Positions 1 to 21,200 of a stretch of 62,846 nt of DNA are shown in pieces (the first letter of the stretch is position 1; each line of letters opens with the position of its first letter). The notes below the pieces were generated by a model. That model worked only from the letters and a program-made list of their open reading frames with translations. It made no database searches and was not told where the DNA came from. The translations under genes were made by a program, and so were the position numbers. The stretch is from Gracilinanus agilis (lineage: Eukaryota): positions 195,801,243-195,864,088 of the forward strand of contig NC_058133.1 in assembly GCF_016433145.1 (NCBI RefSeq). The letters are read 5' to 3'.

Positions 1-864
1 AGGGAGAATTGGAGTAAAGGAATAATTAGAGTCTAATGAGGTTAATTAGCTGAATAGGACTTTGGGGATGAAAGGGAAGACTCTTTCTCATCAGACATGA
101 TTTGAGCAAGGCCTAGTACAACTAACATGGTTACCCAAAGGCCGGGAAAACGTTTGTAACTGCATTCAGTATCTAAGCAGAAGACTATTTTCAGACTGAT
201 AAAAGCCTTTTCAGTTTCTTTAGCTCTTTAAAAAGTCTAGTGAATGCATTTTAGTCTTCCTACTTCCTAAAGAGGAGGCGGAAAAAGGGGAATTCTTCCT
301 GGTGTTCCTGACCAGTCACGGGCTGGTCATTAGCATCTCTGCCCCACTCCCAGGCCTAGGATGGTTTCCTCGGGGTTAGTCAACTTGTGCTGACTGAAAT
401 AGAAATGGGGTGGCAGGGCAATGCTCCATACGTAAGGATCCCTGTGGGCCCCATATCAACTTAGCTTTAAAACGTAGCACTACCTGCACTTCATTGTAGT
501 TTTATTCCTGTTGTCCCATTGACATTTTAATCTGGTTCAGCCACACACGAGTATTGTAACACATCTGCCTTAGAAGTTCTTCCCAAGCTCCCTGATTGAC
601 TAGAACTTGTCTCTTACTTACATCTAGGGATGTACATCCCTGAGGCCTTTCCTGCAACAAGAGAGAGAAGGGGTGCTACAAAGGAACTCAGGGATGGAAG
701 CTCCTGGGAAACCATACAGTGAGGGCCTTTCTGGGCCCAGATGGAGGGGAGTATAGTGAAGTGAGAGGGGCATTCCATATGCAGGTGGGAGCATTCTCAG
801 AGCTAGGCCTCCCCAGCCGCCTCCTATTTCCTTCACCCTGAGTCCTGTCCTTCCCCTCCCTCAG

Positions 865-2784
865 GGCAGCAGCAGCTCACTGTCCAGAATGTTTCTGGGA
901 ACAACCTGACCATCAGTGGCCTGAGTCCTACACAGATTCAGTTGCAGATGGAACAGGCGCTGGCAGGAGAGGTCCAGCCTGGGGAGAAGAGGCGTCGAAT
1001 GGCTTGTACTTGCCCCAACTGCAAGGATGGGGAGAAAAGGTAATTCTAAGACAAGGTCTGGAGAGAACCTGGGCCCCCCACCCTGTGTCCCAGAAGGTTG
1101 GAGGCCCACTGGCTTGTTGTGGGTAACAGGACTCCCGGACCACATTTTCTCCATTTTCTTCCATTTTGCTCTGGCCTGGCCCTCTGCCTCATCTTTGCCC
1201 CCCCCCCCCCTGCCCTGCTCTTCCGGCCCTTTCTCCTATCTCATCTTATTCCCCCCATTCCATGCTTCTCCCTTGCTCCCTCCTCACACTTTCCCTTCTT
1301 TTTTTTCTACTTTCCTCCAAACCAATCTCTAGGTCTGGAGAGCAGGGTAAAAAGAAGCATGTGTGCCATATCCCTGACTGTGGAAAGACCTTCCGAAAGA
1401 CCTCATTGCTTCGTGCCCATGTTCGCCTGCATACCGGAGAGCGGCCCTTTGTCTGTAATTGGGTCTATTGTGGAAAGAGGTTTACTCGTAGCGATGAACT
1501 CCAGCGGCACGCACGGACCCATACAGGTCAGATCCCCAGCCTGGCCAATTCCCACCATTCCCATGCACCCCAGTCTTACTGTGCAGGGACCACATCAAGA
1601 GAGAGCCAAAATCTTGGGAGGAAGGGTGATTCAGTACAAAGGATCCAGGATCCACTCCTATCTCTGGCATTTGCCTTTATGACCTTGGGCAAGTCACTTA
1701 CCTTCCTTGTGCCTTAGTTTCTTCAGCTATAAAATGAAAGGGTTTAGCAAGCAGCTAGGTAGTACAGTGGATAGAGCACTGGGCATCTGATTTCAAAATC
1801 TGGCCTAAAGCACTTCCTAGCTGTGTAACCTTGGGCAAGTCACCCCAGTTTGCCTAGCCTCTCTCCCTTCTATCTTAAAGTCGTTACTAGGATAGAAGGT
1901 AAGAGTTTTTAAATAATTAAATGAAATGAAGGGGGTTGTACTTGACCTCAAAGATCTCTTCCAATTTTAATAAATCTATGATCCTATGATTTACTTTGTG
2001 AGGGGGCTGGAATTTGCAGGGGAAACTCTATAATTCATCTCTCTGTGCAGAGCTAACTTCTAGGAGAGTGCATGTACATGAAGTAGTCTTTTGGATAAAT
2101 AGAGGCCTGACCATTGGTAGGAGAGGGCACCAAAGGTGTCAAAGAAATGCACATTCACAAAATAACCTGGCCAGAATTGAGTACCAACTGAATATCTTAA
2201 GGGCTGATGAGATTAGAAAGAGGCAGAGTCAAAACTGGAAACATTTTCCTTCTGTTTTGAAGGAAAGGATATAGACTGGTAGGAAGCAGTTAGGAGGGCC
2301 CCATGCTAGACAGAGAGAATCATCCAGAAGCATGGACTCCAAAATGAACAAATCCTACACAAGGGATTTGGGAATAGATTAATTTGTGACACAAAAAATT
2401 TGTGTTGGGGACAAATAAGGTGAATTGAAGTGGCCTCAATGGCTGGATTGAACAGTTGGATTTGATATGATAAACAGTATTCCCTGAGCAGAGTCTCTAA
2501 AGCCAGTTTAACATCAGGGCCTGAAGTGGGAGCTGCATCTTCATTTGGGTGTTTGGGTCCTCTTCAACCATCTTACAACTTGCCTTTGGGAGATGAGCTC
2601 TATTGAGGAGCAGAATGATTTCCACCCGCACCTCTGGGTCTGGAGGGTAGAGTGCTGGGATGACAGGCCTCTCTTCTCTCCAGGTGACAAGCGTTTCGAG
2701 TGTGCCCAGTGTCAGAAGCGCTTCATGAGGAGTGACCACCTAACCAAGCATTACAAGACCCATCTGGTCACAAAGAATTTGTAA
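865..2784 (+). CDS. SP2: Transcription factor Sp2, last three coding exons (5' part lies outside the window)
   Basis: Exons 865-1039 ([57 protein letters not shown], Btd box), 1333-1526 (C2H2 fingers 1-2, [37 protein letters not shown]) and 2684-2784 (finger 3, [32 protein letters not shown]). All introns are GT-AG and phase-compatible. Confidence 0.97.
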
Positions 2785-5700
2785 AGTCAACAGCAAGCCA
2801 TTGGAGGCCCTGCAGATTCAACTCCAGTTCAGCCTGGGCCCCCTAGTCAGAGACACCATGGCTGATTCCTTGCCCCTTTATTCCCTGACTGCAGCCCTGG
2901 AGAGAGGGGCTTCAGTAACCATGTTTCCTCCTTCCTAAGCCATTTGGCTGCCACAACAGCCCCTCTTTCCTCCCCCATAAACTCCTGGCCCAGATCCCGG
3001 ACATTGGCCATGTACAATGAGACGTTCTAAACCAGGACGAATGGGAACCTTTATTTCCAAAGGAAAAACATGAATTTCACTCCGTCGAGGAGCCAAGTGA
3101 GAATCCCCTTCTTTTCTCCTCTCCCATCCCATAGCACTGATGTGGCCCAGGGCAGGGGAGCCAAAAAGGAGACACATCCCCCTTTGCTGCTGTCCTTCCT
3201 GTGGGGTCTGGCATACCCTACTCCCACCTGAGGGCAGCATGGCAGCAACATAAAGAACACTTGGGACATGGTCCCAGAGCCCCTATTTGAGGGCCACCCA
3301 CAGAGAAAGTGGGAAGGACACCTGCCTCCCCCCCCCAAAAAAAAAAACAAAAAACAAAATACTTTCTTCCAGCACATTCCAACTTTATATTTTAAATATA
3401 TATATAACCACAGACTCCTCCTGATCTTCCCTGTTTTTCTATGAAGAACGTTGCCTTATACTCTACTTCAGATAATGAACACTGTGTATTGTGTGCGCTT
3501 TTAAATAATTTTATTTAATTGCTCCCTTCTTCCTTTCCTTATTTTTCCTCTTCCCCCATTCCTCTTTTTCAGTTTGGGGTTGGTGGGGGTGGGTTTAGGG
3601 GGTTGTTTTTGTTTTTGTTTTGGACAATGATGAACAGAAAAACATTTTTTCTCTCCATAGACTTTTCACTTCTAAATAACGTAAAATTTCAATTTGAATC
3701 CAGAATCTGATTTTTTTAAAGAACCCTCACATACATACAAACATACTGTCCCTCCCCCTTCCACTTTTTTCTCATCCCATACCCCCACTCAGATCCTGTT
3801 TGTGTATAGTGTATATTGTATAATAGACAATATTGTGTCTACTACANNNNNNNNNNNNNNNNNNNNNNNNNNNNNNNNNNNNNNNNNNNNNNNNNNNNNN
3901 NNNNNNNNNNNNNNNNNNNNNNNNNNNNNNNNNNNNNNNNNNNNNNNNNNNNNNNNNNNNNNNNNNNNNNNNNNNNNNNNNNNNNNTTGGTCAGCACAGA
4001 GCTGGCAAAGAATTTTTTCTTGCTAATAAATTTAGTTGCCTAAGGCAAAGTCAGCAGCTTGGCAATGAGGCTTCCTTTTGTCTTTGTCTTGATGGAGCCA
4101 TGAGCTTCAGGAACTGGGAGAAGAGTGCCAGGGGAAAATAGGGCCCAGCCTCCTCATCTTTCTTACCCTCAGCAAGAATTCCCATCTGAACTTGTAGAAA
4201 GTTGGGTATTTCTATTCATGTGTCCAATTAACAGCAAAGTTGACTACTGTTGGAGATCCGTTTGGGTAGATGCTTCCATTTTTTCCTCTGTAAGCCAACT
4301 TTCCCCAGAGAAAAAATTGATACTAGAGAACCAGACCCTTCACAAGCATTGTCATCAGCGCGGTAATGGCAGGAGTGCAAGTCTCCTCTTGGGTGTTTTA
4401 TTTTTAAGAATCACTTGTATGAGAGTATGGAAGGTTATGAAAATAAGGAGCAAGTCTACCTGCATTTCCTTCCCTAGATACACAGAGGAGAGGGGCATTG
4501 GGCAGAGGCCAGAGAAACCCCTGTCAATGAACTTGGCTCCCTAATGGAACAGAGAGGCCCTTAAGGAGCTAGATCAAGGGTCAAGGTATAAGATGTTTTC
4601 CTTGTGGATAAAGACTCTAATTTGCCCAAAGAAGGACACAAACCCTAAAGATGTGCCATAATAGGGATGGGTCACCCTGAGCTATCTACACTCTTGCTCT
4701 ATTCCCTTTATCACCAGTATTTGCTAGTCTTCAACCTAAGAGCATGGAGGCCCAGTGGTATATGTTCATAGCTGTTGAACCCAGCTAGAGTCAGCAGACT
4801 GGTTCAAATCCCAGCCTCAGCTCCCACTAGCTATCTAAACAAAGATAAGCCACTTAATTCTCTGAGACTCAGTTTCCTTATGTGTAAAAGTTATCACTAC
4901 CTGCCTTGCAGGATTTTTTGTAAGGAAAGTACATCATATAAAGGAGACTGCTCTCTTTGTGACACTTAATTGTACCCTGAATTCATGTCCTAAGAGAATG
5001 TCCTCATGAGCTAGAGCCAATACCCATACCTACACCATTTTGTACAGCAGAAAAGAGGCTCCAAGCTCATCAGCAGTGAGGTCTATGACCCCAGCTGAGA
5101 CTGGTTACATGCTCTTCATCTCAATGCTTCCTTCATAATTGGCAGGGAGAGCCACACTGTAGCCACCCGGAGCTCAGGTTGTCCAAACTTGGACAAAAAG
5201 GCATTTCCATTTGGCAGAGAAAACTGTTAGGGACTCAAACATTGGTAGACGGGGGGCATCTGTCTTGTGTCTACCTTATTTTTCAAGACGGTAAGTTGCA
5301 GAATTGTTGTCTTGTCTGTTAAGAAAAGGGAGTTTCCTCACTGGGAACTCTCTTCTTTGATGAAAGCAAAGGTCCAAATACCATTTCCCACCCTCCCCAA
5401 TCCCCCAGCCCAAATGTGCTATACTATTTTGTTTAAAACACTGCCAAACTGTAGTGTCAAGGAACAAAGTAGTCTCTTTTTCGGCCTCAGCAGAAGGCCC
5501 CCGTTCCCAAGACTTTCCCCTAGGCGGCAGGGTTTTTCCCTTTCCCCTTCATTCCCCATAAGACAAGCATTCTTATCAAGAGGGAAAGGTGAAAGCCCTG
5601 CATGTCCTCTACCTGCAGTCTGAAGAGTGGAAACTTTGAGCCACACAGAACAGTCATGGCCAAAAGGCCATGTTTTACATGTTAATGATTCTATTCGGCA

Positions 5701-5886
5701 TGGGGGTGGCCTCGAGAAGACAATTCCCCTCTCTAGCTAGACCTCAGTTTCCCCGCCTGCAAACTTGGTCTAGGTTTCTAAAGCTCTTTCAAGCTCTAAA
5801 ATTCCATGGTCTAGAAAGGATGGAAGGATGTGGTAGGTTTAATCCAATCTTTATTTGAAATGTTCCGGCTTATGTACAAAGAAAGT

Positions 5887-5983
5887 CTATGAAGTCTTTT
5901 GGTCATGAATTTTGATTTCCAAGATAATATCTCCAAGATGAATGCAGAAGTTCCCACCTGCTCTGCAGACGGAGCCCTCCTCT
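5887..5983 (-). CDS. Candidate alternative terminal coding exon of the BEN-domain gene
   Basis: The acceptor gtctctcctgccag|A at 5983 matches the phase-2 donor GA|GTGAGT that overlaps the stop of the 6630-6521 exon. It would add EEGSVCRAGGNFCIHLGDIILEIKIHDQKTS*. A minus-strand AATAAA lies at 5850-5855. Confidence 0.5.
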
Positions 5984-6520
5984 CTGGCAGGAGAGACCAA
6001 CACAACACCTGGATAGAGCTGATCCTTCAAGGCTCCCATTCACTACCCCAAATCAACACTACTCGCTACCTGGCTTCCAGAGTGTATGTGGATATGTAAG
6101 AGCATGGTGTTGGGAAAGAGCCAGAGTGTTGTCCTAAATGGGGAGGGGGGACAGCCCAGTCTATGGCCTCCTAGTCCTCAGCTCTGGTTTCCCTTCCCAA
6201 AGCCATCAGTGTCGAAGGCAATGATGGGACAAGGCAATAATTCCCTCACTTTTTTCCTCTTCTCTGCCCAACTGACCCTGGACCGCACAGCTCACATGAG
6301 ATCCTAGATACTAGGATTTCAGTCCTATGGCTGCCCTCAGTAGGACAGGATTATGCTCAGAAAAACACAAGCCTTAGGGGAAGGATTATCCATTCCCACC
6401 AGTCTTCTGAAGACAGATCCTGATGGTGCAGTGCTTGCCTTGAGGGTGCTTTTTAAAAATATATAGGTATGTATCTGCCAGCAGATTGCAGGACCTGGCC
6501 CACCCCCGACCTCACCCCAC

Positions 6521-6630
6521 TCACTCCATCTTTACAATCATCTTCTTGACTGCCCTCCTTGAGGTCCCACACTTGCTGTTGATGACGGCATTAAAGTTAC
6601 AACCACGGCCACACACCTTGGTGACATATT
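6521..6630 (-). CDS. BEN-domain gene exon: C-terminal part of the BEN domain
   Basis: Acceptor ccttttctgtcttccccag|AA, phase 1. Translation (E)YVTKVCGRGCNFNAVINSKCGTSRRAVKKMIVKME. Confidence 0.85.
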
Positions 6631-9600
6631 CTGGGGAAGACAGAAAAGGAAGCTGTTCAGATCTAGCTCCGAGCCAGGAGAAGGTGGAGGGGGTGGGCAA
6701 GAGTGCACTCCCAGGCTGACACAGCCATTCTGATCTAAGTTTGCAAGGGGAAGATAGCATTCAGTCTCCCAGACTCTCATCGCTGCCTATATTAAACCAA
6801 AATGCCTTGCTCTTCGGCCATGCCAATAGCTGGAACTGTAAGGAGGTCGAGGATCAGAGAGAGCTGGCATAGAAATGGAGAATTATGTCTTTTCCCCATT
6901 CCCTAAGACATGGCCCAGTTCTCTGCTTCATCACTACTAGAACCACAGCTGGAGAAAAGAATCAGGATGGGAAGGAAGAGAGAGATTGACAGATGGGAAT
7001 GCTTTTCAACTCTTCGATCCCATCCATCCCCATTCTCATGGCCCTGCATGTACCATCAGGGTCAGGGTCCTATCCTTAAAAGATTTACATCTTCCTTCAG
7101 TTTTCGTTCTGGATATTCCCATCAGTTATTTCTTCTCAGCTTTCTCGACAACCCTTCCTGCTTCATACTGGATACCACCCTGAACTTGAACTCTCCCCAC
7201 AATGTCCCTCAGCTTTCTATTTATTCTCTAGTTTAATAAACTCCAAAAGCAGAATTGCATCGATTGCCAAGGGACGGATAGTAAAAGAGTCACCATTTTC
7301 AAAAAAACAAGAATGTTAGGGCTTTAGGGCTCGGTAGAAAATAACTTCTCAAACTAAAAACCTAGATCTTCAGGCCAGTCTCCAAGGCCACTACTTTGTG
7401 GCCCCCTGCCAGAGAGAAGCCAACAGCACATACTACTCCACCCCTCCTCCTGCCTCAGTCACAAAACACTACCCTTGAGGGAATTTGCCCAAGTACCTTT
7501 GATGGCATTGACCACAGCAACGGGCAACCGAATGGGTTTCTCCATGGTAGTGTTATTATGGGCAATTCGTTGACCAGTGGCAGAGGAGCGGGCCAGCGTC
7601 TCCCGAGAGAAGAAGTAATCCAACATCCTCCTAGTCATCAGCTTGGGTTTGTCTGTTGACACCTGAGACAGGTCATCCAGCTGGTGGTGAGTAATGTAGA
7701 CCCCTGAGTTGGGGATTAGCTCTAGCTTGGGTCTCCCATTCTCCTGTGGAAGGGGGAAAGGCACTGACTGTTAGCCTGCACTCTAGCAGCCATCCTATTC
7801 AGCCTGATGTCACCGGAGGGTCTCTTCAGGACCCAGCACCCACAAGGTGTCTGGTCCTAGATGTTAAATGACTAACTTCTTCCAGGGCTCAGGATTCATT
7901 TCTCAGGCCCTGGGGAACCCAAACCAGCAGATAGAACTTCTAATTATAAATTTCATCCCAGATTCCCTTCTCATCATTTCAGATGTCTTGCAGGCAGGTT
8001 TGGAAGGAAAAACCTCCTCATCCTAAACCCTCTAGTCTGTAGGCACTTGACTACTCAGCCCATTCGTGAAAGCTGCAGGTTTCTTAGGAAACCCAGACTT
8101 ATCCCCTACCACTGAGTTCTACGTAACACCCACCTCCACAGGTGATGCCCATACAGGGGTTCCATCAGGCAATGTATCCTGAACATTCTCCTCCCACAGA
8201 CAGGTGGCCTCGCTCAGTGTAGCAGGACTGCCCACCCCATCCTCAGAGGTCAACCATGCTGGAAAGCCACTGGGGAGACCTGCTCGAAGCCTACGGACTG
8301 GTGGAGACCGTGGGGCCTCAGCAGGAGTTCCCTTGGGTTCCACGGGTGGTGATGTGGGAAGCTGTGCAGGAAGGCCATTCACCTGGAGAAGGAAGGGGGA
8401 GCAACTCTAAGCAAGGGAAGTAGCAGCATCTCAGCTTCCTGTTGTATCCCTTACAATGAAGGTTGGCAACCTCCCCCAAAGGCGCTGAAAATGTTCCCAC
8501 CAGTGCCAGGCCACTGGTGTCCCTGTCCCCTGTTAAAGGACAAACAAGGCAGATTACCCTTCTGGGAACATGCCCCCCACTTCCCTGAGGGTATCCCACC
8601 CCAGGCTAATTCTAGCTGGTCCCTCTGCTTCCAAAAGAATTGCCAGATCATATCCAAACGGCTGGATTCTCCTTCCTTTCCTCTGCCCTCCTCATCCTCC
8701 GTATGTGGGCAACCAAAGTCAGAAAGAGTTTGTGGGGAAGGTGTGAACTGTTCCCTCCTAAAGAGTAAGACCATCCCATCAACTTGAAAACCAAAATGGA
8801 CCACATAGTCTATGTTCAATGAACAGGCAGAAATGATATGCATTTTAACACTTAGCTCTATTATTTTGTATATTTGAGTGTGGCCTTCAGGAATCTAGGC
8901 ATCTAGATAAATATTTTTGACAGAAGCCTATCCTAGCATCCACCCAATGCCCAAGCTCCATCTGTGTCTCTCTCCCCAGGAGCTACCAGCTCATCAAGGA
9001 CCCACCTGTAGTGCCATGTTGCTCTCTAGTAGCCCCACGAGGCCCTTGAGAAACTGGATGTTCCCTTCATTGACATCTGAGAAGAGAGAGGCCACACCCA
9101 TGGGGATGGCTAAATGAAGACAGATGTGTTTCCAGGAGAAGGCTACAGCTGGATGTTGATAGGACTATAAGGACCTATTAGACTCCGGACTCAACCTCCC
9201 CACTCCCCAAGCATGAGTGCCAATAAGCCCACTCCCTTTCCCAAACTCCTCTTTCTGATGTTCCTTTTGTTATAAATCCTGGACCCACTGGAAGTGTCCT
9301 CCTGGGGAGCCCACTGCTAAGTAATGGGTCCTAGGGAAAAGGAGAGATGATGGTTCATCAGGACAGAGCCACCAGAGGACTTTTGAGGCAAAGATGACAA
9401 AGGGATCATATATAACAAAGTAAGGAGGGAGGACAGAAAAAAGTGGCAACTCTTGGTGAAGGGCTCCTTGGGGAGGGCAGAGCCTGAATCTGGGAAAGTG
9501 GAATAAGGAACGAGGGCTCAAACAAAAGGAGTGAGTGGAAAATGCAGAATTGGTAGAAGAAAATGAGTTTATAGAGAAGTTTGATGCCTGAGTAGGAAAG

Positions 9601-12378
9601 GGGAAATGGTTGAAATGGAAACAAAAGCAAAGCTGGCCAGAGATCACCAAGTCATCCAAAGGCAACTGAGGAGGGGCCAAATCCCCCTGGGAACCCTGGG
9701 GGAACCAGCCAGCCCAGCCTGAGGGATCCCCATCCAGCCACCTCCTGTCCATATCCCAGAGAGGACAGCTCCCGTTACCAAGGCTACTGGTCCCAGAGCT
9801 GAGGCTGGTGTTGGGAGAGGATGCTTTGAGCCCTGCACCACCTCGGGTGCTAGACAGCAGATCATTCTGCTCCTCTAGACTCCGCAGTTGACCCTTGAGC
9901 TGCTGATTTTCCAGCTCCAACTCTCGGATCCTCCTCTCTTGCCGTAGGGCTGCTTCTTCCCTAGAGACCAATAGCCTCCGAAGCTCTGCCATCTGTAATT
10001 CCAACTCCTTGACCAGTTCTGCATACAACCCGGTTACCTTGCCTCCTCCTGCAGCCCAAGGGCAGGCTCCTTCTGAGGCTAGGGGCTCTGTGCTTAAGGC
10101 CAGGGGCTCTGTGCTCAAACGGCTTAGAACAGGTGTGGGGTGGCACAGCCGGGCAATAGTGGGGCGAGCAGCCCTCAGGGGTTCCTGTGTCCTTGGAAAT
10201 CGAGTAGTGTCCTGGAGACCCCCAGGTCGAATGTCCAGGCTGCTGGTGCCACCACTTGGGAAGAAAGGAGCAGCTGGTAGATCTGGGACACTTAGTCCCC
10301 GTGGGAAGGGAGGACCAAGGTTTGGCCCATTGGTAGGCCATGGTCGCTTCCTGTTCTTGGCTTCTTCTTCTGGTGCTAGCAGTGGTGGGGGAGGCCTCCC
10401 CAGAGTCAGAATTCCCCGTGCTTGGACACTAGAAACAAAATACAAACCTAAGCCACTGGTAGCTGTTTCCAAAGCCCCAACCCAGGGAGAAAAGTATGGG
10501 AGAAAGTAGTGTATGATAGGGAAGACCTCCCTTGGATATTTCCACCTCCCGATTTCATCCAAATAAGGTACTAAAATGATTCTAGTTCTAGTTCCTAAGG
10601 CAACTCCTCCAGGATATTAGGGACTTGGATTTCTGGAGACAGGTAGGATGTCCATATCCCGGAATCAACCCCTCAGAAAATATATCAAGCGTAATCTCTC
10701 AGGGTCCAACTAAGAAGCGTGGCCCCAGTACAAGACAAATAGAGCCTGGAAGCTCCAGAAGACAAGGATTCAGGCCTTCACCAGGCCAGTGCCCAACACA
10801 AAGTAATGCTTAATAAAAGCAGTTTACATATAGTACCTCTTTCAAAGTCAATAAACATTTTTTGAATAGATATCCCAGTGTGTAAACCCTAGTGCTGGCT
10901 ACAAAAGGAAAATCAGAAGAGGGAGGTGTGATCCCTGACCTCAGGGACCCTTCAGTCTAAAAGGGGTGAGTGGGGTACCTAAGAAAGAGCAAGACAGATT
11001 TACAAAGCAATCTTCTAAGAGCTACATTTGTATAGGGTCACCACTATAGAAGGGGATGAGATTAAGAAAGGAGGAATAAAGGATCCATGCATCAAGGACA
11101 GGGCTAAGCCTAGTGATAGTCTTCACTGGGTCCCATCTAGGCCTAGGCCAGGTCTTAGAGTCAGACTCCTGGGTCTTCAGGCTTTTAAATTCCATCACCA
11201 GGAACCAGGCTTCTCTGCTGACATACCAAATAAGAATCTTCCCTGCCACTATCCTGATGCCATTGACCTTGGAATGGAAGTAAATGGTTTACCCAAGATT
11301 TAGACTCAATCTACCAATCTCCCCCCTTTCTCCAAACCTCCACAGTACTCAGGGTTTCAAAATTTATTCCTTTTCTCATTCTCTGATAACCATCTTTGGT
11401 GTATTGTATTTTATCATTAGCCTTACCCCTCAACTCTTTTGCCTTTATTTCTAACCATCCCACCGGGCTCTTGACCTCTAAGGGCAGTTACACTTTTCTT
11501 TCTGTCTCTCTCAAATATAGTCCAATCCTCATGATCCTCTCCCCTAGTGCGCTACAGCCCAGGGCTGATCAATGTGGCCACAAGAACAGAAAGTATGTCA
11601 CCTTGAGGTGTGACATCAACATATTGCTTATATCAGTACCAGTGGATTTTACAGGTGGGGATATATACACAGCAAGAAAGTTGGTACAGTAAACTCTCAC
11701 CACACTGACAAAAAGCTGTTTCACAGAAAATCCCAAATAGCATATAATCCATTATTTCCAGCGGAATGAACACTAACTCTGATGTCAGAGAACCCAGGTT
11801 TACATCCCAATGCTGACATTGCCTATGTGACCTTGAGCAATCCTCCCTGGGCCTCAGTTTCCTCATCCGAAAAATGAAGGAGGAATTAGACTGTATGGCT
11901 TCTGTGGTCCCTTCCAGCTCTAGGACCCTTTGAGGCCTTCTAGTGAATATATACATGCATATATATATATACACATATATATGTACACACATATTACACA
12001 TACATACATACATATGTAATTGGCAGAATTTCTCTCCCTGATGGTGTTGGCTCTGAAAATGTATCACCCAGAGTGCACAATGATGGCTGAGAGAAATCTG
12101 CATAAAATGGACTCTGGAGATTGACTATTCACTGTCTCAAAATATCAGCAAGAGGTCCCTTACCTGGCACACTCCAGGGACACTTGTCTTGGTGGCTCTT
12201 GGACCTCCAGTTCCTGATGCTGCTGAAAACTGGGACTGCACAGGGGACCCCCTCCCAGGGCAGCTTCAGGCAAGTCAAAGGTGGGATGAGCATCAGCTGG
12301 CTCTCCATTACCCAGTCCTGAGTCCACAGCCTGGAAGTGGCCTTGTAAAGCCACCCTCTCCCCGGCCCCCTCAGCCAT
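6521..12378 (-). CDS. Unnamed coiled-coil + C-terminal BEN-domain protein (NAC1/NACC-like BEN), about 513 aa, 6 coding exons
   Basis: Minus-strand coding exons 12378-12164, 10428-9779, 9076-9006, 8382-8134, 7743-7497 and 6630-6521. Every junction is GT-AG, the acceptors are pyrimidine-rich, and the phases match (2,1,0,0,1), giving one uninterrupted frame. It encodes a heptad segment (LYAELVKELELQMAELRRLL...LEEQNDLL) and a BEN-like domain (KLELIPNSGVYITHHQLDDL...RRMLDYFFSRETLARSSATGQR...VNAIKEYV...NAVINSKCGTSRRAVKK). Confidence 0.85.
7497..7743 (-). CDS. BEN-domain gene exon: core of the BEN domain
   Basis: Acceptor cctttcccccttccacag|GAG, donor AAAG|GTACTT. Translation ENGRPKLELIPNSGVYITHHQLDDLSQVSTDKPKLMTRRMLDYFFSRETLARSSATGQRIAHNNTTMEKPIRLPVAVVNAIK. 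Confidence 0.9.
8134..8382 (-). CDS. BEN-domain gene exon: Pro-rich linker
   Basis: Acceptor cccccttccttctccag|GTG, donor GAG|GTGGGT. 249 nt, phase 0-0, open frame VNGLPAQ...LPDGTPVWASPVE. Confidence 0.8.
9006..9076 (-). CDS. BEN-domain gene exon: 71-nt exon, too short for the ORF track
   Basis: Acceptor ctctctcttctcag|AT, donor CAG|GTGGGT. Phase 1 to 0 bridges the neighbouring exons exactly. Translation (D)VNEGNIQFLKGLVGLLESNMALQ. Confidence 0.8.
9779..10428 (-). CDS. BEN-domain gene exon: large exon containing the coiled coil
   Basis: Lies inside ORF 9270-10562. Acceptor tttgtattttgtttctag|T (phase 2), donor TTG|GTAACG (phase 1). Heptad-rich E/R/L/Q segment at about 9853-10028. Confidence 0.8.
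12164..12378 (-). CDS. BEN-domain gene: first coding exon (exon 12415-12164, ATG at 12378)
   Basis: Strong acceptor cgtttctctccttctcag| at 12415, cagATGG start, strong donor CAG|GTAAGG. Translation MAEGAGERVALQGHF...PPRQVSLECA. Confidence 0.75.
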
Positions 12379-13468
12379 CTGCTGGCACAGACCTGGGGAC
12401 CAGCCCCCGAGGCACCTGAGAAGGAGAGAAACGATGAATCTTAGCCCAGGTAGGAGGTCAAGACAGGGAAGTCTGCCGCACCACACACGGAACAGAACCC
12501 ATTCTGAGGAGCGTGATCTCAGTCAGCGAGGGGCAAGCACAAGCACCTACCTGGCTTACGGATGCCCCTGTGCCCGGAGGCTCCCCGCAGCCCCTACCGC
12601 CTCCTCCTCGAACCCCGGCTCAGTCCTCGGTCCTACAACTAACTTCATCCCCGGCGCCCTCCTGGCGCCAGCACTCCCTTCCCCCAGCCCGGCTCACCCC
12701 ATTACCCTGCCCCTGTCCCGGCTCTCCCCTTCCCAGACCCCTGAGCTGCGCTCTGCGGTTCCCTCTTCCCCTCCCCTTCCATGGGACGCCTAATCATCCC
12801 GGCTGCCCGGAAGATTGCTACCGCCCCCCACCACCACCGTGCCGTGTCCCCCAAAGTCCTCGGTCTGCTTCCCCCTCCCTTCTCCTCCCCTCCCCTCCCC
12901 AGCCCCAGACTCTGGCAGCCCCTGTACCTTTAACAACACCTCCATGTGCGTATTGACGGCAGTGACTACATTTCCTGGTCTCTTTGTTCCCGCCCCCTTC
13001 GGCGCTCCCCATTGGTGCCGAGGCTCTGTTTTTCCCGTTCCAATTGGCCCCGTTCCCGGAAGACTCAAGCCAATGACCTTTCCGTGTTGTTCCCCCGCTC
13101 CCCCGACCCTGGGCTCTCATTGGATTCCAGGGTGGGGGGCGGGGCCGGCGGGAGGTTAGACAAGTGACAAAACCCTCGGATTAGGGAAAAAGCGAAGGTT
13201 CGGAAGCTGAGTCAGATCTTGTCGCAGAGGTGGGAGAAGGAATTAAAAAAAACAAAAAGAGAGGGGAGTGGGGAAAGTGGGGGAGGGGCGAGGGCCGGCG
13301 GTTCTCGCGTACATGCGAAGAGGCGTCACATGGCCTTGCGGTCGCCATGACGACCCGACTTGGTAGCAAGGCGGGCCTCGCGCTGCGGGCGTCGTGACGT
13401 GTGAAACAGGCTGCGGGCTTGCGGGCAAGATCTCTTACCTCTGCTGCAGGTGTGCGGTCTGAGCGGTC

Positions 13469-16621
<3,153 letters not shown>

Positions 16622-17074
16622 TTGTCTGATGGCTGGTGATTGGATCCTCTCAGCTCACAGCTGGAAACTGGAACAGAGTGGTGAGAAATACAAGGAAAGT
16701 TCCCATCAGGCTCTAAGCAGAGCCCCCTTACTATACATTCAGAGCCTTGCCAGCTTGGTCACCTAAGCACTTTGTTATTAAGTCAACTTTAATTTATTCA
16801 TGGTTAGTAACAGGTAATGAAGAGTACCCAAAAAACAATCCAAAATTGGATAATCCAAAAATCATTTCTGTTTGAGCTTGAGTGTTTACAGGAGGATATG
16901 CACATATGTTTTTGGGCAACAAAGTTACCAGTAACTAACTTCAAATATGTGAAGCTTTGTCATTCATGATGAAGAGAAATTATATTTACTCAGTTTATCC
17001 CTAAAAAAACAGATGTAGAGCCAGTGGCTAGACATCATAGAGAAGTTAGTATCTTCCGTAAGAATATCCTGGAG

Positions 17075-17255
17075 GGGGGGGGGCAGCTGGGTAGCTCAAT
17101 GGATTGAGAGCCAGGCCTAGAGACGGGAGGTCCTAGGTTCAAATCGGGCAGCTGTGGTACCCTGGGCAAGTCACTTGACCCCCATTGCCCACCCTTACCA
17201 CTCTTTCACCTAGGAGCCATACACAGAAGTTAAGGGTTTAAAAAAATGTAAAAAA
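17075..17255 (+). mobile_element. Opossum SINE1-type element
   Basis: tRNA-like head gggcagctgggtagctcaatggattgagagccaggcc, CORE-like body, and tail ending aagggtttaaaa. Confidence 0.85.
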
Positions 17256-17291
17256 AGAATCTCCTAGCAGGGATTCCAGAATGGTGTAAAC

Positions 17292-17496
17292 CAGTGATGG
17301 GCAAACTTTTTTAAAGAGGGGGCCAAAGGAAAGGAAATGCTCATCTGTCAGTCTGTTTTTAAGGCAACTCTTTCGAAGTTTCATTGTCTTGTATCCCACT
17401 CATTGTATTCATCAGATTAGGAATAATGTCACATTTCAGGGCTCTCCCCACCCCCACCCCCCATCTGGCCTGAAGGCTGTAATTTGCCCATCACTG
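17292..17496. mobile_element. Non-autonomous hAT (Charlie-like) DNA transposon / MITE
   Basis: Terminal inverted repeats CAGTGATGGGCAAA...TTTGCCCATCACTG, with a perfect 8-bp TSD GTGTAAAC at 17284-17291 and 17497-17504. Confidence 0.9.
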
Positions 17497-18235
17497 GTGT
17501 AAACAATCAGACTACATGAGCTCTACTTTTTTCCTATTCTAAAATTGACTTGAATCAATAGTAATTATAAAATTGCACGATTATGAAATCATTTTGCCAG
17601 ATCCTGGTGGGGTTAGGTCTAGTAGGCTGGGAGGAATCCAGGATGGTCTTCAGTCTTTACTGTGAGGCAGCTACATGGGAGAAAAAGTTGCTTGCTGCTT
17701 GTACTCATTGATGTTGCCTTGTCTACTTTGTGAACATGTGTATGGTTTCCTGGATAGCCAAACCTGCCTGTGTCTCCCTACCCCAGTTGTAAGCTTCAGA
17801 GTTTGAATCAGCAGGCCACAGCTCATACTCACAGGAGCCTGTTGTTGTAAGAGCCCCTGAGCTAAGAATAGTTTAAAGTTTTTCTGTTTTTAAAAATTCC
17901 TTAGCTCCCAAGCCCTTGGGGCCAGATTTGATCCTCAGGCCACAGTTTGTACCTTGCTGCTCGAGAGGAGCCCATAGTTTCCTTGAGTCTGCACGGCTGC
18001 ACAAGCTGGGGGTAGGAGCCTAATCTGTCTCCCCTTACCCTTCCTTTCAATGCCCATAATACTGTGCCATATTGAGTGGATTCCAGGCAGAACAGTATGT
18101 GAGTGTGTGTCGGTGTGTCTCAATGTGCAATATGGTCTGGTGGTCAGGCCCTGTGTTATCCCTTCTCAGCCTGCCCTAGTCCCTGGATGCCACTCTGGCC
18201 TCTGCTTATGTTCCAGCCTCTTGTACCAGTTCTGT

Positions 18236-18241
18236 AATAAA
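18236..18241 (+). terminator. Probable PNPO polyadenylation signal
   Basis: First AATAAA I found downstream of the PNPO stop, followed by pyrimidine/GU-rich sequence. Confidence 0.55.
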
Positions 18242-21200
18242 GTCTTCAGCTGTGCTGTTTAATGGTCACCTCTCTTGCTATCCAAGCTCTGTGCCCTCCT
18301 GATAGTGGGTGGGGACGCATGAGTCATTCTCCTCCCCTCTCTCCTCTGCTTCCTGCTGGAGTTAAGGAGGGTCAAGGCTAAGGGAACCTCCATCCCTGTC
18401 CAGTAGAGGGAGCTGGCTACCCAGGATTGGTCTCTATCAGGTGGATTCCAGTTCTGGCTGGTCCCCCTCCAGTAGTGTTGGGTCCTGGCCCAGTGAAACT
18501 GCTACCCAGATAACCCCTGGCCTCTCCCAGTTCCAGCACATATTTGCACTCTCAGTTCCTCCTCCTCCCCTTCTTTCCCTTGCTTCTTCATCTCCTCCTT
18601 CCAGACTGTCACCCTATCCCTGAGGGAGAGCTCACTGCAGGGGGCACCCAGGGAGGGCAAGACTGCTGAATAGTACCTCCCAGCAGAGATGGGGCCTTTC
18701 TTCTGGGGGGGGGGGCAGTCAGTGACTGCAGAGGAGAAGGAAGGGTAGGAGTGGTAGAGGGCTGTGACTATCAGTAGGAGCTCAAGCTAGTGGTGGGACT
18801 GGGATGACCCCAGAATCTCTACCCTCCCTGTTACATCAGTAACTAATCTCAGTGAAATAGGCTCCAGGTTGGAGGCCAGTAGAGGGTAGGCCCGGTTTCT
18901 CTCCTCAGGAGTTATCTCCTCTGCTTTCTAAGCTGGCTTTTCCCCAGCACCTCAGAGGAAACAGAAAACGAAGCTTCTGTCACCTGTTCCCACACAGGAC
19001 CTATTCAATCAGGAGAGGATAACTTACCTGCAAGAATTCTATCTTCCTCCCCACCACCACCCAAAAAACCACCAATAGTGAGTGATTTAAATGTATGGGG
19101 TTTTGTCACCCACTAGAAAAAATGAGGTGAGGAGTTTCCCTTGTTAGAATAAAGAGAATGTGATGAGGGACTTCAGGTGTGAATTCAGATAAAGTGTTTG
19201 GCAAGCCTTGGAAGGAAGCAACATGAGTGACCATTGTTATAGAACCCCAAGGTACACAAAGTCTGGGAGAAGAAAAGGAATGTCAAAGCTAGTCTAGCCC
19301 TTCCCCCTACCTCCCTCACTCCCAAGTTCCCCACTGGCCAGGGTGAGGCACCATGACAAAGGTCTCCTTGTACCATAAGCCCCAGTTTGTTTTGAAAATA
19401 AATTTCCTGGGAAACAGTTTCTGAGCAGCTGTTCCCTAGGGGAGGGTGGCCCAGTAGGCATTGAGGTTTGAATATAAGCTGCAGGGTGGCATTGTTTGGT
19501 CAACCTTCCTGCTGTTCTCACTCTCCAAGTTCAAGGGATATGGCTCATTCTTTTTTATCCTTGATTTCTTTCCATTTACACAGGCAAAGCCTGGACCCGA
19601 GGACCTAGTGAGAAAGATTGGAACATATCTCTAGGCAGGGTTCCCTTATAGCCCCTGGAGATGTTGAAAGTGAGAAGTGAAATTTATTATTGAAGGGAAC
19701 CATCTTCCAAGATTTAGCCTTTTTCAATTTGTTGACCTCAGATTTGTTATGAATGGTAGACAGATAACTTTAGCTTCCATTACAGTGGCCCAACTATGCC
19801 CCCATAGGATATGGCTACAGTGAAAGTGGAGTTTGTCAGTAAACTGGAGGATATTAAAACTAGTCCCCTCACAGCCTGATACTTCCTAGGAGGTAGTTTT
19901 AGAGCAAATAAGAGGAGCTACCAATTTACAAAGCAGACAGAAAGTTTCTTTAGAAATCCTGAATATATACACATACACACACTCCAGGCCATGGTTCATG
20001 GGGGCTTTAAAAAAAAGGCAATCACAGGAGTGAAAAGCCCATAAGAAACCATGAAGGGTGAATGAGAGATGCTTCTGTGGTGAGGACAGAACAGCATTTA
20101 GGGCTATTCTCTGAGCCAGAGCTGCACATGCTTGTTTTTTTATATTCCGATTGACCCAGATCTGTAAATAGGAGATGTGGAGCAGGTAAATTATGGGACA
20201 GATTGTGGCAGCTTTCTGGAGTTCTTCTATTCAGTTTTTATTCTTTTCATTTTTTTAAACCCTTACTTTCTGTCTTAGGAATAACTCTTAAGACCGAAGG
20301 ACAAGGGTTAAGCAAATAGGATTAAGTGACTTGCCCAGGTTTTTTTACACAATTAGAAAGTGTCTGAGGCCAGATTTGAACCCAGGTCTTCTTGTAGCCA
20401 GGCTTGCTCTATCCACTGTGCCACCTAGCTGCCCCACTTTTTTTCATCCAGGGCTGATAAATGGTGGCCCCTAACTTTGGGTCAAGCAGGTGGAAGAGAC
20501 CATACCTCTGCCCAGCCTTCAGCTCCAGTGACTGCCATCATAAAGACTTTCCATTTTCAAGTTTCAAGGCATGTTTATTACCAAAAAGAAATTTATGACC
20601 AAACTATAAAAACAAAAAATTCAAGGCCCAAGATGTCATTCGGGGGCTACATATTCTGGTAGGGAGAGTTGATGGGTGGGAGCATCTTCGTTTCCCTGAG
20701 CAGGAATCTTTTGGAGCTGTGTAGCTCCCCCTTTGTCACTGTTTCTCAACATACCTAGAAGACAGTATCTCTGGCAGGAACTTATATTTACCAATCTGTC
20801 TCTTTGGGGTCTTAAATGGAAAGTTAAGAGACCCTCTTCTGGCTACATTTTAAGGCAAAGTTCCAGAAAGTGCAAAAGGAGGTGAAGTAAAGGGTTGAAA
20901 TTCTACTGCCTTGAATGCTGGAGAAGAGACTACATCTTCACTCCATGTAGAAAAAATTCCCACAGGAAAAAGGCTTTGGGTGAAAGTGGAGGAGGGAGCA
21001 GCAATTCAAACTTGACCCTGATCCTTGTTTCTGTGGAATAGGAATGGCACTTCACGGCACTTCACCTTCACCCATCCCTCCCTCCCGGCAGGCACTGCCT
21101 AAAACTATAATGAGGATTGACCCTCTCTTTCTTTCCAGAGACAATCCTTGAACTGAGGAGGACCCTACATGTGGGGGTGAGGACAGGCCCAGTCCTCCCG

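Follow-up and report, generated by a model that had tools for sequence, protein, structure and literature searches.

An ancestral BEN-domain gene between SP2 and PNPO, disabled in eutherian mammals and likely still transcribed in human as the long non-coding RNA SP2-AS1

The subject of this analysis is a gene for a BEN-domain protein (hereafter the BEN gene) that lies on the minus strand between SP2 and PNPO in a 62,846-nt stretch of the genome of the marsupial Gracilinanus agilis (contig NC_058133.1, positions 195,801,243 to 195,864,088 of the forward strand), referred to throughout as the window. Taken together, our results make it probable that this gene, which is intact and constrained in marsupials, was disabled in placental mammals while antisense transcription driven by its promoter persisted, in human as the transcript annotated as the long non-coding RNA (lncRNA) SP2-AS1. 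The BEN gene and SP2-AS1 are thus likely to represent a new example of a protein-coding gene that decayed into an lncRNA.

The BEN gene in vertebrates and its remains in eutherians

Between the 3' end of SP2 and PNPO, an intact gene with one 5' non-coding exon and six coding exons was read from the minus strand, with GT-AG boundaries throughout and in a region free of runs of N. A BEN gene on this strand at 5800-13300 was what the original prediction had proposed, and the gene model bears this out, with poly(A) signals at 5855 and 5843, which mark the 3' end of the gene, fitting the lower limit. The phases of the six coding exons match and the exons join into a single open frame of 513 amino acids; a three-frame reading of the minus strand across 5000-13800 placed the BEN-like stretch at 7770-7462 and a coiled-coil stretch within a long open frame at 10616-9273. 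Exon 1 is non-coding and extends over 12928-13012 as a minimum; koala isoform P0025 includes it, joined to exon A. Its donor is AAAG/GT at 12928/12927 (the slash marking the exon boundary), and the transcription start site is probably near 13050-13150. Exon A (12164-12415) follows an acceptor at 12417-12416, carries the ATG at 12378-12376, contributes 71 codons plus 2 nt and ends at the donor CAG/GTAAGG. Exon B (9779-10428) encodes a proline-rich disordered region and then a long coiled-coil helix, exon C (9006-9076) a short conserved helix, NIQFLKGLVGLLES, and exon D (8134-8382) a linker with a conserved LPDGTPVWASPVE motif at its end. The N-terminal two-thirds of the BEN domain are encoded by exon E (7497-7743), the translation of which matched the Pfam BEN family PF10523 at 33.1 bits (E=6e-8; cut-off 23.2 bits). 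Exon F (6521-6630) supplies the remainder of the domain and the TGA stop, and the 3' untranslated region (UTR) runs on from it towards 5830.

The nearest protein was Monodelphis LOC103101315, an orthologue with 98% identity over the variable exon B, followed by proteins from other marsupials, turtles, tuatara, alligator, amphibians and coelacanth. When the C-terminal 144 amino acids were used as the query, 99 orthologous clusters were recovered, covering marsupials, turtles, crocodilians, tuatara, squamates, many birds, frogs, salamanders, caecilians, coelacanth and sharks; there were no eutherian, monotreme or ray-finned fish proteins among the 99 clusters, and this C-terminal search found no afrotherian protein of the family in the databases. 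Exhaustive HMMER searches gave identities over the BEN exon of 93-98% in turtle, caecilian and coelacanth, 73% in shark and ~51-52% in scallop and Lingula, and the family forms an orthologous group of its own with these invertebrate relatives. In codon comparisons of the BEN exon, opossum and alligator differed by 38 synonymous-only and 3 non-synonymous changes, and opossum and platypus by 37 and 5, respectively. This excess of synonymous differences indicates strong purifying selection. As judged from these sequence comparisons, the BEN gene was already present in the ancestor of jawed vertebrates, if not earlier. Ray-finned fish had no BEN orthologue among the matches, though fish PNPO was plentiful and sharks and coelacanth have the gene; ray-finned fish may represent a further independent loss.

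The position of the gene is also old. In Alligator sinensis (locus L001) the order is PNPO on the minus strand, the BEN gene on the plus strand and SP2 on the minus strand, with the start of the BEN gene ~1 kb from PNPO in a head-to-head arrangement and its coding exons spanning 10001-18495 of that locus; the annotated 3' part of the alligator gene overlaps an SP2-like zinc-finger gene on the opposite strand. In approximately 12 further species the BEN gene and PNPO were found on a scaffold of the same size. In platypus (locus L007), exons B-F were located upstream of PNPO on the opposite strand, at 610-3693 (minus); the parts that aligned were free of stops and frameshifts, with identities to opossum of 92% for the BEN exon and 89% for the last exon. 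Protein searches returned no platypus or echidna protein, and the platypus gene is probably unannotated; a long CAG/CAA repeat (~8660-8960) occupies the place in the platypus locus where exon A would be expected. The presence of the gene between SP2 and PNPO in the window, in alligator and in platypus shows that it is ancestral and not a marsupial gain.

Eutherian loci were identified through their PNPO proteins, using a bird PNPO open reading frame (ORF) as the query, and were taken with 10-kb flanks from sloth (L004), hare (L005), serow (L006), dingo (L008) and naked mole-rat (L009). These were searched by tblastn with the opossum, turtle, alligator, tuatara, caecilian and coelacanth proteins and by nhmmer with the opossum exons. 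None of the five loci had a gene call between SP2 and PNPO. The nhmmer matches in the eutherian intervals were all on the minus strand, colinear and upstream of PNPO: exon A was recognized in sloth (E=6e-26), dingo (3e-25), serow (7e-16) and hare (1e-9), exon D in sloth (4e-15) and hare (6e-8), exon E in sloth (1.5e-27), and exon F in sloth (5e-5) and, at E=0.01, in dingo. Measured from PNPO, these eutherian relics are situated 1-5.5 kb upstream, in antisense orientation. The tblastn matches in sloth were likewise on the strand opposite PNPO: 8936-8740 for exon A, 5720-5619 for the end of exon D, 5382-5139 for the BEN exon (56% identity, E=6e-14) and 4634-4578 for the last exon. The decay of the sloth copy is extensive: the BEN exon has two stop codons, a 2-nt deletion and a 3-nt deletion, exon D a stop and a 17-nt deletion, and exon F a 24-nt deletion, and the acceptors of exons D and F are lost. 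The segment that holds exons D and E in sloth (~1.3-1.7 kb) is reduced to ~280-390 bp in dingo (L008:5247-5637) and serow (L006:5596-5872), which indicates that both exons were deleted; this deletion may be common to Laurasiatheria.

Several of the inactivating mutations are shared between lineages. The start codon, ATG in opossum and alligator, is ATA in sloth, dingo and serow, and that part of the exon is lost in hare. Between fixed anchors in exon A there are 60 nt in opossum and 63 in alligator, as compared with 59 in sloth, dingo and hare and 59 minus further losses in serow, and the 1-nt deletion coincides with the frame change seen by tblastn in sloth and dingo. In exon F, the distance between anchors is 42 nt in opossum, platypus and alligator versus 38 nt in sloth and dingo, a deletion of 4 nt. 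The exon D deletions of sloth and hare were considered as a further shared lesion and rejected, as they overlap and are of unequal extent. These three shared lesions link Xenarthra with Laurasiatheria, and one of them also includes Glires, indicating that the gene was already dead in the common ancestor; on the alignments, the BEN gene was disabled before the split between Xenarthra and Boreoeutheria. We conclude that at this locus it is a unitary pseudogene in eutherians. The outgroups and eutherian remnants thus came out as the original prediction had anticipated, with the gene in its place in alligator (PNPO, BEN, SP2) and platypus (exons B-F upstream of PNPO), and with no intact ORF at the five eutherian loci, four of which have alignable, colinear, same-strand remnants carrying shared inactivating mutations.

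The shared promoter and the link to SP2-AS1

In the window, the BEN gene stands tail-to-tail with SP2 and head-to-head with PNPO inside a CpG island that acts as the candidate bidirectional promoter of the BEN gene (minus) and PNPO (plus), at 12400-13400, with a GC content of 0.61-0.67 and an observed/expected CpG ratio of 0.5-1.2. Exon 1 reaches to at least 13012 on the minus strand and the first PNPO ATG lies at ~13349 on the plus strand, so that the predicted starts fall within the 1 kb that defines a bidirectional pair. Opossum and four eutherians can be aligned over the CCAAT/ATTGG boxes, a GC box and the GGGGCGGG motifs. When the 1.6 kb that precede PNPO were aligned, eutherians agreed with one another at 79-92% identity over the counterpart of window positions 13130-12940, and opossum agreed with sloth at 68-82%; this stretch contains three to four CCAAT boxes, the GC box and exon 1 with its AAAG/GT donor. 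The donor is intact in all aligned species and the last ~60 nt of exon 1 are kept in sloth, dingo, serow and hare. Furthermore, the GT donor of exon A was retained in all four of these eutherians, as GTAAGG in three and as GTCAGG in hare. Immediately 5' of the exon 1 donor, eutherians have CACGTG (an E-box) and opossum CACATG. Conservation of the promoter, exon 1 and the donors is what would be expected if antisense transcription and splicing outlived the coding frame.

In human, the published gene order is SP2, SP2-AS1 (an lncRNA), PNPO (PMC10045734), and the published coordinates of SP2-AS1 (chr17:47897330-47941410) and SP2 (47896150-47928957; PMC11144322, supplement) show that the whole 12.5 kb from SP2 to the PNPO side lies within SP2-AS1, which ends at the PNPO CpG island. 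In addition, a 530-bp differentially methylated region in that island has been assigned to PNPO as well as to SP2-AS1 (PMC10403495). The relics found 1-5.5 kb upstream of PNPO in other eutherians would therefore fall within the SP2-AS1 transcription unit. The location of human SP2-AS1 between SP2 and PNPO, as originally predicted, is confirmed by this order, by the coordinates and by the common methylated region, with the strand taken from the name; it is for human alone, and from published data, that an annotated lncRNA was found in the syntenic position and orientation. The mouse counterpart named in the prediction, D030028A08Rik, is an lncRNA (NR_003293) that may be a transcript of the BEN relic as well. 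As to the proposed conversion of a coding gene into an lncRNA, the unitary pseudogene at this locus stands as demonstrated, and human SP2-AS1 is likely the transcript of the relic, a conclusion drawn from its position, from the "antisense" in its name and from the conserved promoter, exon 1 and donors.

These observations can be combined into the following proposed course of events. An ancestral BEN gene would have been transcribed divergently from a CpG-island promoter with CCAAT and GC boxes that it had in common with PNPO. In the eutherian stem it would have been disabled by loss of the start codon, the 1-nt deletion in exon A and the 4-nt deletion in the last exon, and what was left would later have decayed at unequal rates, leaving exons A, D, E and F in sloth, removing D and E in dingo and serow, and leaving nothing recognizable in naked mole-rat. 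The promoter and exon 1 with its donor would have been kept, probably because PNPO needs them, and the PNPO promoter would keep antisense transcription running across the dead gene, with the human transcript annotated as SP2-AS1.

Parallel decay in birds and alternative explanations

Two short fragments (P0034 and P0037), with ~73% identity to the BEN exon, were recovered from bird contigs; they had been candidates for eutherian relics and were rejected as such because they are avian, contig L002 carrying a kakapo-identical Sp2. This contig (Logan SRR31383118, 1-5475) is intron-less and RNA-like, with the order PNPO, BEN relic, SP2, and its Sp2 ORF exactly matches that of kakapo Sp2 isoform X2. 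The BEN relic, at 1068-2186 on the plus strand, has frameshifts and a deletion of ~30 amino acids in the BEN domain. A kakapo RNA contig with a decayed BEN gene indicates that the locus is still transcribed after decay of the coding frame, independently of eutherians. Decayed BEN exons were also present on a second bird contig (L003:2-485, plus strand; ERR14654795), which is genomic with short introns, and this copy and the kakapo relic share a change of D to G in LLDYFF, one lost Asn and a change of N to S before AIK. The falcon predictions P0119 and P0130 look degraded, and songbirds were absent from the matches; loss of the BEN gene may be wider in Australaves.

The explanation that competes most directly with ours accepts the pseudogene as real and regards SP2-AS1 as an unrelated by-product of the PNPO bidirectional promoter, with new exons and no "conversion" of a coding transcript. 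Bidirectional CpG-island promoters commonly yield antisense transcripts, SP2-AS1 is annotated over 44 kb, which goes well past the old gene and includes all of SP2, and several eutherians have deleted or lost relic exons, all of which would suit an origin of this kind. Against it stand the ancestral gene, which was already on the same promoter and strand with an exon 1 donor that is intact in four of four eutherians, the exon A donor retained in the same four, and the kakapo relic, which is transcribed and spliced despite its own independent decay. We consider a pure by-product unlikely. A different and more far-reaching suggestion is that losing a BEN factor whose DNA-binding domain is more than 90% conserved from coelacanth to marsupials had regulatory effects in the eutherian stem, that SP2-AS1, instead of being promoter noise, has been kept for action in cis on PNPO and SP2, and that parrots (and perhaps falcons and songbirds) independently went the same way; this is speculative, and we would rate its chances as low, though not trivially so.

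That a working eutherian copy has been missed by annotation, either at this locus with an altered structure or elsewhere in the genome, has a precedent in the platypus copy, which is apparently intact and yet unannotated. Stops, frameshifts, lost splice sites or whole-exon deletions across the five eutherian loci speak against such a copy, as does the lack of any match in many annotated eutherian proteomes for a BEN domain that is more than 90% conserved elsewhere, and it appears very improbable. The absence of a eutherian protein from the databases would also be expected if the BEN gene were a gain of marsupials or of non-eutherians that eutherians never had; this reading is already refuted by the orthologues from platypus to sharks, by the alligator synteny and by the decayed exons in four eutherians, and we give it next to no credence.

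Several points nonetheless weigh against the explanation we favor, namely a disabled gene that is still transcribed in human as SP2-AS1. The function of the PNPO promoter alone could account, at least partly, for the conservation of exon 1. The link to SP2-AS1 was built on published coordinates rather than on the exon sequence of the lncRNA, with the strand read from its name, and the publications that name D030028A08Rik give no position for the mouse lncRNA. Among the relics, exons B and C had no match by tblastn or nhmmer in any of the five eutherian loci, and naked mole-rat, the one rodent examined, had no relic of any exon at the protein or DNA level. In platypus, exon A was not found in the locus, so that intactness there covers exons B-F. 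The lesions were sampled from Xenarthra, Laurasiatheria and Glires, and do not cover all Placentalia if Afrotheria branched first. Finally, the function ascribed to the BEN protein comes from domain homology, and the structural model of its BEN region (see below) is of low confidence.

The protein, neighboring features and relation to known systems

The BEN protein is most likely a nuclear, dimeric, sequence-specific DNA-binding regulator of transcription, as far as its domain composition indicates. Precomputed PF10523 annotation was present in all orthologues, and the coiled-coil part gave weak Pfam matches only. The AlphaFold model shows an N-terminal disordered region of 190 residues, a long helix at residues 198-262 (the coiled coil; predicted local distance difference test, pLDDT, above 90), a second helix at 288-309 and, in the BEN region, helices at 410-508 modeled at low confidence (pLDDT 46-81). 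By sequence, the closest solved structure was the BEN domain of NAC1 (E=4e-11 over ~110 residues), while Drosophila Insensitive (Insv, 4ix7) was a weak match (E=0.047). No Pfam match to a BTB/POZ domain was found in the protein, which places it outside the BTB-BEN (NACC1/2) subfamily.

Additional features of the gene and its surroundings were as follows. Exon B has two same-phase GT donors 63 nt apart, at 9842/9841 and 9779/9778, of which the downstream one is kept in all orthologues; the donor at 9842 was evaluated as the conserved site and rejected, since the orthologue alignment places that site at 9779, which adds 21 amino acids, and use of the upstream donor could yield an isoform shorter by this amount. 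At the other end of the gene, Monodelphis isoform X2 (P0001) defines an alternative 3' coding exon and the end of the 3' UTR at 5830-5985 on the minus strand (limits approximate), and its C-terminal tail fits a minus-strand frame at 6039-5890, or an alternative exon near 5985-5890. SP2, a plus-strand gene, has its three final coding exons, which encode zinc fingers, at 870-2784; its stop codon is close to 2784 and a poly(A) signal follows at 4025. The 5' coding region of PNPO lies at 13349-13785 on the plus strand, as placed by tblastn with marsupial PNPO and by the frame listing, with candidate ATGs at ~13349 and ~13471, the upstream one fitting the longer N-terminus of possum and devil PNPO. 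Its first coding part is split, ending near 13519 and continuing (AFEEEHL...) from 13657 in another frame, which indicates a small intron of ~137 nt (about 13520-13656); further PNPO exons follow on the plus strand from ~14.4 kb, with Pfam PNPOx_N matches there. Runs of N in the window are located at 3847-3986, 30711-31090, 56964-57143 and 62071-62202 (140, 380, 180 and 132 nt, respectively), the first in the region of the SP2 3' UTR.

We found no publication on this BEN gene in the accessible literature. A deeply conserved vertebrate BEN-domain factor is, from the present results, apparently lacking in placental mammals while marsupials and monotremes have kept it. SP2-AS1, which is widely measured in expression signatures, thereby gains a likely origin in a dead transcription-factor gene whose promoter is common to PNPO. 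The dated shared lesions and the independent parallel in birds make the locus a clean case for asking why transcription outlives coding capacity and, should the reading in which SP2-AS1 acts in cis be true, a repeated natural experiment in the change from gene to lncRNA.

As a protein, the product of the BEN gene can be compared with two known groups. The conserved helices of the BEN domain align with those of NACC1/NACC2 (NAC1), which differ in having an N-terminal BTB/POZ domain where the window protein has a disordered N-terminus and a long coiled coil, and which are encoded at another locus. BEND5, BEND6 and Drosophila Insensitive ("BEN-solo") are dimeric sequence-specific repressors. They resemble the window protein in architecture, with a coiled coil and, at the C-terminal end, one BEN domain, although their sequence similarity to it is much below that of NAC1.

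As a locus, it has its closest relatives among genes that were lost in place. Xist, which arose from Lnx3, is the classic lncRNA fossil of a protein-coding gene, and the comparison drawn with it in the original prediction holds in kind only: Xist acquired a new RNA function, and none comparable is known for SP2-AS1. The lncRNA fossils of Hezroni et al. (2017) are alike in that a coding gene was lost in the eutherian stem, with a syntenic lncRNA and exon relics; the present case differs from them in that transcription was plausibly kept by a promoter common to an essential neighbor, PNPO. SP2-AS1, SP2 and PNPO do not appear in the available part of the text and tables of that study (PMC5577775). 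Unitary pseudogenes such as GULO in primates are similar in that a single-copy gene was disabled in place, with lesions common to several lineages; in comparison with GULO, the loss of the BEN gene is much older, dating to the eutherian stem, and an annotated lncRNA continues to be made from the locus.

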